From Octopus sinensis (lineage: Eukaryota): a stretch of DNA of 64,000 nt. The position numbers were made by a program, and so were the translations under genes. The DNA is taken from the NCBI RefSeq assembly GCF_006345805.1, contig NC_043019.1, forward strand, positions 25,915,360 to 25,979,359, in the 5' to 3' direction. The notes under the pieces are model-generated. The model was not told the origin of the DNA. It did no database searches and worked only from the letters and a program-made list of their open reading frames with translations. Positions 56,654-63,883 of this stretch are shown here, piece by piece. How positions within the stretch are numbered: the stretch's first letter is position 1; each line of letters starts with the position of its first letter.

Positions 56654-56690
56654 TATATAAGGCTGGTAGAGGAACGGTGTAACACTTGTT
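56654..56690 (+). promoter_or_regulatory. Candidate TATA box and transcription start of gene B
   Basis: TATATAAG at 56654-56661, CACTT initiator-like sequence about 30 nt downstream, ATG at 56722. Confidence 0.55.
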
Positions 56691-56721
56691 TGTGGTCCGT
56701 TGCTCTACACTTGTCTCGACT

Positions 56722-56790
56722 ATGGCCTTAGTCCGTGCTTGTGTGTCCTTGCTGCTTATTGCACTCTTCTATAACTATGCAACTGTTCAG
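56722..56790 (+). CDS. Gene B exon 1: signal peptide MALVRACVSLLLIALFYNYATVQ
   Basis: ACTATGG start context, basic-then-hydrophobic N-terminus, perfect CAG|GTAAGT phase-0 donor. Confidence 0.85.
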
Positions 56791-57069
56791 GTAAGTCCTT
56801 CCGATTTATTATAATATTCCTTGCATTATATTACTATATCATACCACTATATTCTATTACTATATCATTAATGCATTACATTAGTATATTTCGGAGGTGT
56901 AGTTACCCGACAGGCGATTTGATTGGAGACCGTGTGTTGAAACCAAAATTATTGCAAAAACACACAAAGATTGTTAACTTCACTTAAACATCTGTTATTT
57001 GGTTACCAAATCTGTGGTATTGAGCAGAATATATACTGTAGCCCATCTTTTATACTCATTTCTACTCTA

Positions 57070-57638
57070 GGCACAAGGCCCTACATTTTCAGAGAAGGGG
57101 CCAGTCGATTAGATTGACCCCAGTACGCAACTGGTGCTTAATTTATCGACTACGGTAAAATGAAAGGCAAAGTCGACCTCGGCGGAATTTGAACTCAGAA
57201 CGTAACGGCAGACGAAATATCTATTTCTTTACTACCCACAAGGGGCTAAACACAGAGAGGACAAACAAGGACAGACACACGGATTAAGTCGATTACATCG
57301 ACCCCAGTGCGTAACTGGTACTTATTTAATCGACCCCGAAAGGATGAAAGGCAAAGTCGACCTCGGCGGAATTTGAACTCAGAACGTAGCGGCAGACGAA
57401 ATACCTATTTCTTTATTACCCACAAGGGGCTAAACACAGAGGGGACAAACAAGGACAGACATAGGTATTAAGTCGATTACATAGACCCCAGTGCGTAACT
57501 GGTACTTAATTTATCGACCCCGAAAGGATGAGAGGCAAAGTCAACCTCGGCGGAATTTGAACTCAGAACGTAGCGGCAGACGAAATACCGCTAAGCATTT
57601 CGCCCGGCGTGCTAACGATTCTGCCAGCTCGCCGCCTT
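57070..57638 (-). mobile_element. Serially nested array of three family-2 SINE copies
   Basis: Each copy's 3' tail abuts the GACGAAATA(T/C)C motif inside the tRNA region of the neighbouring copy (57216-57221, 57400-57405). Confidence 0.8.
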
Positions 57639-61900: not shown

Positions 61901-62166
61901 TATGATGCTCCCCCACTACTTCTGCTCGTGATCAGAGATGCACATATCGTCAGCCACTAAGGGACATGCTCAACTGGTTAAGGTCAAACAACTGACAAGC
62001 AAATCTGTGGTATTGAGCAGAATATTTGCTGTAGCCCATCTTATTATTATTATTATTATTATTATTATTATTATTATTATTATTATTATTATTATTATTA
62101 TTATTATATTATTATTATTATTATTATTATTATTATTATTATTGTGACTGTTGTTGTTGATTTCAG

Positions 62167-62307
62167 ATTGTCGTGATGAAAATGTTGATTGTCGTTACTG
62201 GGCCGCTACCGGAGAATGTAAAACTAGTGCAGAGTTCATGAATAAAGAATGTAGGAAATCTTGTCAGTTGTGTAAGTCCATGCACCAAACTCAACCAGCA
62301 GTTGATG
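62167..62307 (+). CDS. Gene B exon 3: ShKT domain CRDENVDCRYWAATGECKTSAEFMNKECRKSCQLC + KSMHQTQPAVD linker
   Basis: GATTTCAG acceptor, ATG|GTAAGT donor, 141 nt, phase 1-1, intact cysteine pattern. Confidence 0.92.
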
Positions 62308-63772
62308 GTAAGTTTACCTTTGGATTCTTCTACCCGGTTGTCATTCACTTTTCCTGCTCCACCCGTTTTCTACTGTTGTTTCATTTAAGAAGTAACGAGA
62401 TATTTATAAACAAAATGTAACAGAAACACCCTCCAGCTATTTCATAGCGAAGGGAATTTTACAAATGGCCGTTGGGATTGGCCTTGATTTGGGAATGGTG
62501 GGTAGATTACTCGGAGTTTCTCGCAAGCCACGGGGTGGGTGTATGTGTGTGTGTGTGTGTGTGTGTGTGTGTAAAACTTGAACGGCAAAAATCCCATTTT
62601 ATTTCATTTTCTTCTTATGATAAAAATATGTTCACACCACGCCCTCGGAGAGAAACCAACAGGTGTAAAACCACACAGGTATTCTCTCTTTAATATATGA
62701 ATAATGGTAGAGAGGCAGGTTGGATGACTCGTTAGCATGCCAGGCAAAACGCTCGGCGGCATTTCGTTCATCTTTAAGATCTGAGTTCAAACTCCGCCGA
62801 GGTCGATATTGCCTTTCATCCTTTCGGGGTCAATAAAACATGTACCAGTGGTCAATGCAATTGATTTAACCCCACCGCCACCAGAAGTTGCTGGCCTTCT
62901 GCCAAAATTTCAAAACCATTACTATTATTATTATTATTATATTATTATTATTATTATTATTATTATTATTACTATTATTATTATTATCATTATTATTATT
63001 ATTATTATTATTATTATTATTATTATTATTATTATTATTATTATTATTATTGAGTGAGAGAGCAGCGCATGCCATCAAAGTGACACTGGATTAAAATATA
63101 CGAAGCCCAGTATACCCATCATAACCACCCGTCTGATAAGGGTACACCAGGCACATGCATCACAACCATATGTGCGCGACATGGTGATCTCATATCAAGG
63201 TAAACAGCGCATGACCTTGCAGGTGGGGCCCAGTTAGAATTTTCTTCAGGTCGAGTAGCCCATCCCGCTCAAAATGTCCCTGAATAAGGGTTGTTTAAGG
63301 ATGTTGAAAGAACCACCCATGTTTCCAGAGGTGAATTATTCAAACCCCAAAGAATCCCTCTCAACACATGGCTATGATGCTCCCCTGCTACTTCTGCTCG
63401 TGATCAGAGATGCACATATCGTCAGCCACTAAGGGACATGATCAACTGGTTAAGGTCAAACAACTGACAAGCAAATCTCTGGTATTGAGCAGAATATTTG
63501 CTGTAGCCCATCTTTTTATACCAAAACAAAATAATGTACATGATAACACTTCCAATCAGTTAAGATCAGAAGCCATGAGAGCCACTGCCTTGTACTGCAT
63601 CAGAGCATTTAGTATTTATTTTTGTTGTTGTGGGTGGTAGTGTTGGTGGTGATGGTGGTGGTGGTGGTGGTGGTGTTATTATTATTATTGTTGTTGTTGT
63701 GGGTGGTAGTGGTGGTGGTGGTGGTGGTGGTGTTATTATTATTATTATTGTTGTTGTTGTTGTTGATTTCAG

Positions 63773-63883
63773 AATGTCTTGATCAACATAAGAAGTGTCC
63801 TCATTGGGCCTCTGTCGGAGAATGTGACAAGAATCCGAAATACATGCATAAGTACTGTGAAAAATCTTGTCAGTTGTGTGAAG
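63773..63883 (+). CDS. Gene B exon 4: ShKT domain CLDQHKKCPHWASVGECDKNPKYMHKYCEKSCQLCE (gene continues beyond the window)
   Basis: GATTTCAG acceptor, AAG|GTAAGT donor, 111 nt, phase 1-1; absent from the ORF track; followed by the same conserved intron block as the other ShKT exons. Confidence 0.92.

Follow-up and report, generated by a model that had tools for sequence, protein, structure and literature searches.

A putative octopus gene for a secreted tandem-ShKT precursor with a 5' module shared with astacin-ShKT genes

Introduction

Astacins are secreted zymogens, and the ShK family is named after a sea-anemone toxin with potassium-channel blocking activity. This work concerns gene B, a candidate gene whose 5' end lies near the end of a 64,000-nucleotide stretch of Octopus sinensis DNA (contig NC_043019.1 of assembly GCF_006345805.1, positions 25,915,360 to 25,979,359 of the forward strand; this whole stretch is the window referred to below, and positions are counted from its first letter), downstream of an array of ShK exons that we term gene A. 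In molluscs, astacin (M12)-ShKT proteins have been described, as have secreted proteins in which a signal peptide and a short linker are followed by two to four ShKT domains; domain and gene duplication are frequent, and the astacins of Octopus bimaculoides carry up to four ShK repeats (PMC6409789). For most multi-domain ShKT proteins, channel activity has not been demonstrated (PMC6409789). In the gastropod Cumia reticulata, the M12-ShKT proteins consist of an astacin domain followed by several ShKT domains, and the multiShKL proteins of a signal peptide, a short linker and 2–4 ShKT domains (PMC6409789).

The layout of gene B is that of the multiShKL proteins, with a signal peptide, a short linker, at least two ShKT domains and, within the window, no enzyme domain. 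The M12-ShKT layout is that of an Octopus vulgaris gene annotated as 'metalloproteinase nas-13-like'. Here we compare gene B to this gene and consider it probable (roughly 0.73) that gene B is a separate gene for a secreted tandem-ShKT precursor, in which a 5' module from an astacin-ShKT gene has been joined to a ShKT array.

Results

The first four exons of gene B

A preliminary description of the window had proposed that gene B opens with four exons, the second of which is a micro-exon of 31 nt. The lengths, borders, phases and joined peptide were all recovered as proposed, and the four-exon start is thereby confirmed as sequence anatomy (Table 1). All introns have GT-AG borders, the phases at the three junctions are 0, 1 and 1, and the ATG, which is preceded by an in-frame TAA 14 codons upstream, has an A at -3 and a G at +4. 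Once joined, the exons encode 117 residues. Exon 4 is closed by a donor and is left in phase 1, so that gene B runs on beyond base 64,000, where further ShKT exons of phase 1-1 are expected, and these residues are the N-terminal part of the protein only.

The joined product was compared to known proteins in a word-indexed search and in an exhaustive search of representatives, and it was the latter that yielded its relatives, among 3778 ShK proteins. The closest of these by identity (P0010) is O. bimaculoides A0A0L8HE40, a second model of whose gene (LOC106871202) is RefSeq XP_014773035.1 (P0151); the O. vulgaris 'metalloproteinase nas-13-like' (P0152) carries a propeptide, an astacin domain and ShK domains after its signal peptide. 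The first 26 residues of gene B are identical (26/26) in all three. We note that a signal peptide followed by ShK domains was also found in several unrelated proteins among those retrieved. A separate possibility, that P0010 is the window gene under another model, was rejected: only its exon 1 maps in the window, and no ShK domain found there exceeds 67% identity to those of P0010.

The gene encoding P0152 occupies positions 10001-42613 of an O. vulgaris locus (OX597836.1:26267065-26319677; L001 hereafter), where exact spliced alignment divides it into 14 GT-AG exons. Exon 1 has 69 nt (phase 0-0) and exon 2 has 52 nt (0-1); exons 3-8, which encode the propeptide and the astacin domain, lead from phase 1 to phase 1 overall; exons 9-13 are all of phase 1-1, with ShK exons of 144, 111 and 141 nt, and exon 14 is short and terminal. 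When the two genes were aligned, positions 56589-56956 of the window matched L001 9870-10234 with 96.7% identity, exon 1 being identical over 69/69 nt and using the same donor, CAG/gtaagt. Positions 58140-58979 matched L001 12532-13367 with 89% identity, and here the micro-exon aligns to O. vulgaris exon 2, which begins at the homologous ttctag/GTGTCTGCA, with both splice sites at homologous positions. Both ends of intron 1 are homologous to those of O. vulgaris intron 1 (56791-56956, about 97%; 58140-58888, 89%). The micro-exon differs from its 52-nt counterpart in length by in-frame insertions and deletions only (net -21 nt), and its donor has changed from gtgaga in O. vulgaris to gtaaga, with a change of the last exon base from A to G, which brings it closer to the consensus. 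The proposed micro-exon is thus supported, in that it is the DNA homologue of an exon of 52 nt and keeps both splice sites, and the existence of exon 2, like its junction to exon 1, is supported by an annotated gene of another species.

Signal peptide and promoter-proximal sequence

The signal peptide of gene B comprises 26 residues, encoded by exon 1 and the first nine bases of the micro-exon. An arginine (Arg5) is located in the n-region, the Kyte-Doolittle maximum over 10 residues is 3.02, and Val-Ser-Ala precedes Tyr27. The product is thus predicted to carry a cleavable N-terminal signal peptide, cut after Val-Ser-Ala (Ala26/Tyr27), and the mature chain would begin with YSDFANSD and lead directly into the ShKT domains, with 8 residues before the first Cys. 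Two further proposals, namely that the signal peptide is split by an intron and that its cleavage site sits on the micro-exon, agree with the O. vulgaris gene: the split falls after Gln23, as at its exon 1/exon 2 junction, and the VSA motif sits on its homologous exon 2.

Sequence similarity extends upstream of the ATG to a promoter-side block, a TATA-like element and a minimal 5' untranslated region (UTR; Table 1). The in-frame translation of the latter, LFVVRCSTLVST, is 100% identical to the stretch that precedes the signal-peptide Met in O. bimaculoides XP_014773035.1. Residues 1-116 of this RefSeq model look like a read-through fusion, since they contain, in order, the last ShK exon of an upstream astacin-type gene, a retained intron flank (RKFSFGFFYSVAIHFSCSTRFLLL) and the 5' UTR, before the signal-peptide Met is reached. 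It is with this Met that the UniProt model A0A0L8HE40 begins.

The protease exons are absent and intron 2 is chimeric

When P0010, P0151 and P0152 were used as queries in tblastn, no propeptide or astacin coding segment was found between 58.9 and 62.2 kb or elsewhere in the window, and neither propeptide exons 3-4 of P0152 nor residues 27-95 of P0010 had a match there. The gene B product also had no Pfam match to the astacin catalytic domain (PF01400). The preliminary description had argued that gene B leaves no room for an enzyme domain or a long propeptide, and at this locus that is true, with an empty tblastn search and the first Cys 8 residues away from the predicted cleavage site. In relatives that begin with this signal peptide, a propeptide and an astacin domain are present, which suggests that gene B is a derived, protease-less version. 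Judged from its sequence, gene B shares the ancestry of its 5' module with the astacin-ShKT (nas-13-like) genes and is no protease.

Collinearity with the astacin gene begins approximately 0.8 kb 5' of exon 1, continues through 59098 and then ends. The distal part of intron 2 resembles ordinary introns between ShK exons: 60066-60890 matches 21689-22502 and 60221-60896 matches 25831-26511 (72-76%), while 60987-62158 matches repeat copies that are located in gene A introns and in the intron between exons 3 and 4 of gene B. Intron 2 is therefore chimeric, with a switch of parent within 59.1-60.07 kb. The interval in between holds a short interspersed element (SINE) present in 7-19 copies in the window, and a second repeat (59621-59943) that matches L001 8315-8637 as well as 41030-41211 of the window.

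These observations are most simply read as a recombination between the early part of intron 2 of an astacin-ShKT (nas-13-like) gene and an intron from within a ShKT array like that of gene A. Such an event, which may have been mediated by repeats, would have brought in a 5' module reaching from approximately 0.8 kb ahead of exon 1, through exons 1 and 2 with the intron between them, to the beginning of intron 2, and would have removed the propeptide and catalytic exons. Since exon 2 of the parent ends in phase 1 and every ShKT exon is of phase 1-1, the new junction would have been in frame from the start. Gene B would then be transcribed from the inherited astacin-type promoter and its product secreted, to act outside the cell through ShKT-mediated binding, for which an ion channel, or whatever the ShKT tail of the parent protease binds, could be the target.

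ShK domains and coding constraint

The Pfam ShK model (PF01549) matched the gene B product in two stretches (66.8 bits against a cut-off of 20.9, E 2.5e-18), and both domains, like all five of gene A, have the canonical spacing of six Cys. Gene B thus belongs to the ShKT family and to its multi-ShKT secreted class; without the catalytic domain it is not an astacin, although its 5' end descends from an astacin gene. The ratio of nonsynonymous to synonymous divergence (dN/dS, NG86) in comparisons to other units was 0.45-0.82 for exon 3 and 0.35-0.82 for exon 4, with no pair above 1. Weak additional support for constraint comes from the in-frame insertions and deletions of exon 2.

The seven ShK units of the window and the three of the O. 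vulgaris gene follow a single design, in which each domain has its own symmetric exon of phase 1-1 that is duplicated along with the flanking intron sequence, and the seven ShK exons of the window have a common acceptor, a common donor and conserved intron flanks. The flank that follows the exons, over its first ~110 nt (62308-62417, 63884-63993, 24973-25082), reads gtaagttta..ctttgg.ttcttctacccggttg...ctgctccacccgttttctactgttgtt. Identity between units reaches 86-89% in the flanks, the ShK cores are approximately 70% identical, and synonymous divergence is 0.4-0.7. Diversifying selection on exon 3 was suspected from the better conservation of the intron flank compared to the core, and was not supported, dN/dS being below 1 in every pair. 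The conservation of the flank could reflect gene conversion confined to the intron, or a constrained intronic splicing element.

A repeat of ~530-590 bp is located just 5' of several ShK exons of both genes, with copies that are 88-97% identical (60987-61577 and 61576-62158, which form a tandem pair before exon 3; 62989-63576, 23398-23932, 24096-24669 on the - strand, and 26737-27425). It is also found in introns of the O. vulgaris gene (L001 17872-18419 and 41005-41586).

Could the exon model arise by chance?

The donor of exon 1 had the highest score among the 4018 GT sites of the + strand. Between exons 1 and 3, 470 open AG..GT segments would turn phase 0 into phase 1, and the micro-exon ranked first. 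Open first-exon candidates running from an ATG to a GT between 30.8 and 62.1 kb numbered 1443, of which 13 had a strong donor; exon 1 was the best of these 13 for its hydrophobic core, its n-region has a net positive charge, and joining to exon 2 places V-x-A at -3/-1. No comparable additional phase 1-1 exon was found between the micro-exon and exon 3, where the best segment scored 11.8 versus 14-16 for the real exons.

It had been argued beforehand that phase agreement, together with consensus splice sites at every junction, makes chance unlikely. The ranks above bear out the part that concerns splice sites. The phase match is no independent coincidence: the O. vulgaris gene, too, leaves its exon 2 in phase 1 and has ShK exons of phase 1-1 throughout, and the agreement in gene B was thus inherited from the structure of the parent gene, and does not reflect luck.

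Alternative readings of the locus

Several points weigh against the reading of gene B as a separate tandem-ShKT precursor gene with a 5' module of astacin-ShKT origin. No close match to the 117-residue product was found among 5.8 billion clustered proteins, so that gene B appears to be unannotated in the protein sources searched. Its 3' end and stop codon lie beyond the window, and the similarity of exon 1 and its flanks to the O. vulgaris sequence is too high to inform on selection. The splice scores were obtained with a generic weight matrix that we wrote from the textbook consensus, and are approximate; the signal peptide was assessed by simple rules and homology; and the breakpoint interval is rich in repeats. 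The lack of a matching protein from annotation or transcript assemblies would also fit a 5' module that is a dead relic, in other words a partial duplicate of the astacin gene, lying upstream of a ShKT array, that is not transcribed or is not spliced to 62167 (a pseudogene or non-expressed fragment). The main functional domain of the parent gene is indeed gone, and neighbouring gene A ends in a decayed ShK domain, which indicates that decay does happen in this cluster. A relic is nevertheless unlikely in our view, as no damage is seen in the ATG, its surrounding bases, the TATA-like element or any of the six splice sites, the insertions and deletions of exon 2 are in frame and its donor is closer to the consensus than that of the parent, both ShK exons keep their six Cys and a dN/dS below 1, and the O. 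bimaculoides relative of intermediate architecture (signal peptide, propeptide, ShKT) has been modelled by two independent annotations.

We consider it quite improbable that genes A and B are one long gene, in which 27892-28032 would be spliced over ~34 kb to 62167 and 56722-58919 would provide at most an alternative promoter or first exon. All ShK exons are of phase 1-1 with the same splice-site flanks, so that any of them would join in frame, and the last ShK exon of gene A closes with a donor and not with a stop; but this donor is followed by a phase-1, stop-bearing terminal exon (30718-30752) that corresponds by homology to the last exon annotated for the O. vulgaris gene, and the intron that precedes it (28028-28696) is collinear with the last O. 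vulgaris intron. Matches to sequence that lies downstream of the O. vulgaris gene are found at 34287-34836 and 52140-52686, the ~26 kb between the end of gene A and the start of gene B are transposon debris with reverse-transcriptase fragments and microsatellites, and gene B possesses a complete promoter-proximal module of its own. With a stop-bearing terminal exon that belongs to gene A itself, the evidence favours two separate genes. An assembly artefact, by which the 5' end of an astacin gene would have been mis-joined to a ShKT array inside 59.1-60.1 kb, is very improbable. The homology to the two parents does switch within a SINE and another repeat, and the assembly is of draft quality, with a gap of 100 N elsewhere in the window (19404-19503); the junction itself has no run of N, exon 2 is present in its derived 31-nt form and not in the 52-nt form of O. 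vulgaris and O. bimaculoides, and the read-through RefSeq model implies that in O. bimaculoides, too, the 3' end of an astacin-type gene is followed by the signal-peptide exon.

Gene A and the remainder of the window

Within the window, the sequence 5' of gene A yielded no signal-peptide, micro-, propeptide or astacin exon, and a search there for a paralogous signal exon or micro-exon, which would have given internal support to gene B, returned microsatellite matches only. The 100-N gap is located ~600 bp upstream of the first visible ShK exon of gene A, and the 5' end of the gene may lie outside the window or have been lost in this gap. When the joined gene A was searched against the 5.8 billion clustered proteins for a model that would span A and B, no close match was obtained, the best being P0010 at 50%. 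Within 1.3 kb of the gene A stop there is no canonical AATAAA, only ATTAAA, from 32038 onwards.

The terminal exons of gene A (30718-30860) and of the O. vulgaris astacin gene (L001 42564-42680) are both truncated ShK domains. In gene A a TAG occupies the expected position of a conserved Trp codon (CAT-stop-ARRGE) and part of the domain is deleted. In O. vulgaris an intact-looking remainder of the domain (…IWASRNECKINPAYMLAYCKRSCAVCT, then a stop) runs on in another frame after a shift of 1 nt, which may reflect a true frameshift, or else an indel of the assembly by which the annotated protein is cut short.

The window is rich in repeats, with many microsatellites and SINE copies. The SINE-like element of ~190-240 bp is found in many copies (three in tandem in intron 1 of gene B and one in the breakpoint interval, Table 1; also 20661-20891, 25447-25692, 48528-48765 and 51286-51541) and is abundant in the O. 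vulgaris locus too. Transposon debris, comprising a fragment of a mariner-type transposase (PF01359, E 3.6e-17) and several fragments of reverse transcriptase (PF00078), lies at 935-1228 (+), 29929-30243 (-), 33186-33503 (-), 46881-47553 (+) and 50051-50359 (-). The open reading frame (ORF) at 12772-13119 (+) recurs, nearly identical and in inverted orientation, at 32727-33074 (-). Between 38900 and 40700, a long run of trinucleotide and other simple repeats, with a strong GC skew (0.49 at 38-40 kb), gives rise to artefactual ORFs of 200-325 codons on the - strand. No tRNA genes were found in the window using ARAGORN.

Table 1. Positions in the window of the features of gene B, its surroundings and gene A.
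Feature	Position	Strand	Description
Upstream promoter-side block	55919-56267	+	79.5% identity to L001 9358-9731; single-copy in both sequences
TATA-like element, tatatatataagg	56648-56660	+	62-74 nt 5' of ATG; found by pattern scan; identical in the O. vulgaris gene; putative function
Minimal 5' UTR	56686-56721	+	Nucleotide-identical to O. vulgaris
Gene B exon 1, coding part	56722-56790	+	69 nt, ATG to CAG/gtaagt, phase 0 out; encodes MALVRACVSLLLIALFYNYATVQ, the signal-peptide n- and h-regions
Gene B intron 1	56791-58888	+	2098 nt; three tandem SINE copies (about 57053-57640) and a (GTC/GTT)n microsatellite
Gene B exon 2, micro-exon	58889-58919	+	31 nt, ttctag/GTG...CCG/gtaaga, phase 0 in, 1 out; VSA/YSDFANS plus one base, predicted cleavage site
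Gene B intron 2, proximal part	58920-59098	+	Collinear with astacin gene intron 2; 89-90% identity to L001 13308-13548
Gene B intron 2, breakpoint interval	59099-60065	+	Collinear homology to neither parent; SINE 59296-59534, other repeat 59621-59943
Gene B intron 2, distal part	60066-62166	+	Homologous to ordinary introns between ShK exons
Gene B exon 3	62167-62307	+	141 nt, atttcag/AT...ATG/gtaagt, phase 1-1; first ShK domain and linker, six Cys
Gene B exon 4	63773-63883	+	111 nt, atttcag/AA...AAG/gtaagt, phase 1-1; second ShK domain
Gene A ShK exons	20092-20232, 21104-21244, 22994-23134, 24832-24972, 27892-28032	+	Five exons of 141 nt, phase 1-1
Gene A terminal exon	30718-30752	+	tttgcag/CT TGC ATT GAT..., phase 1 acceptor; joined to 28032 completes Pro, then CIDENTQCAT and TAG

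Discussion

With this analysis, the annotation of an octopus locus that is rich in repeats has been corrected and completed; the 5' end of gene B could be fixed there only by way of a micro-exon of 31 nt. The locus also illustrates cleanly, at the level of the genome, how a ShKT protein without protease may derive from an astacin-ShKT gene, with a breakpoint located to within about 1 kb. If gene B is expressed in secretory tissue, its product would become a candidate for binding, or for modulating channels, outside the cell. In other respects, gene B is a case of ordinary phase-1 exon shuffling.

Compared to gene B, the O. vulgaris nas-13-like gene is alike in its signal peptide, its 69-nt exon 1, its 5' UTR and the splice positions of exon 2, and its ShK exons are likewise of phase 1-1, with the lengths of 141 and 111 nt and the acceptor (gatttcag) and donor (gtaagttt) style seen in gene B. 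It differs by six further exons (3-8) that encode the propeptide and the PF01400 domain and by two spacer exons before the ShK exons, all of which gene B lacks in the window. Its exon 2 has 52 nt versus 31, and at the DNA level there is no close similarity between the ShK exons of the two genes. The O. bimaculoides protein A0A0L8HE40 (LOC106871202) resembles gene B in its identical signal peptide and in the absence of an astacin domain; the signal peptide is followed by an N-terminal segment and 4-5 ShKT domains, the fourth of which is the one that the second domain of gene B resembles most (57% over 49 residues by tblastn, or about three quarters identical over the 35-residue core when counted by eye). 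It differs from gene B in that ~70 residues homologous to astacin propeptide exons, ending in ...HRFRRW, precede the first Cys, and in that its exon 2 is long. With a signal peptide, a propeptide remnant and ShKT repeats, this protein looks like an intermediate architecture. A tentative and rather doubtful extension is that the protease was lost stepwise across Octopus paralogues, from astacin-ShKT through signal peptide-propeptide-ShKT to signal peptide-ShKT, with gene B as the end-point; a digestive or venom-type astacin would thereby have given rise to free secreted ShKT-repeat proteins that keep the promoter and signal peptide of the parent and enter the same secretion, for example that of the salivary gland. 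If true, this would be a molluscan parallel to the toxin families that are born by domain loss from larger enzymes.

Among proteins of known structure, the best sequence matches to the second domain of gene B (residues 56-90 of the mature query) are 2mcr_A (E 1.9e-5), from a probable zinc metalloproteinase, and 2k72_A (E 4e-4), the toxin domain of MMP-23. Both are single ShK-like domains cut from proteases, and the likeness is one of sequence only.

Both the kind of gene and the kind of evolutionary event described here are already known. Patthy (1999), as cited in PMC6409789, is the source for phase 1-1 exon shuffling of extracellular modules, by which such modules can be deleted or added without breaking the frame, and the gene B locus would be an instance of it, with no difference in principle. 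Cumia reticulata belongs to another molluscan class, and the likeness of gene B to its multiShKL proteins is one of architecture. The Cumia study was based on transcripts and gave neither gene structures nor a link between the M12-ShKT and multiShKL classes (PMC6409789), whereas at the octopus locus a genomic link between the two, in the form of a shared 5' module, is visible.

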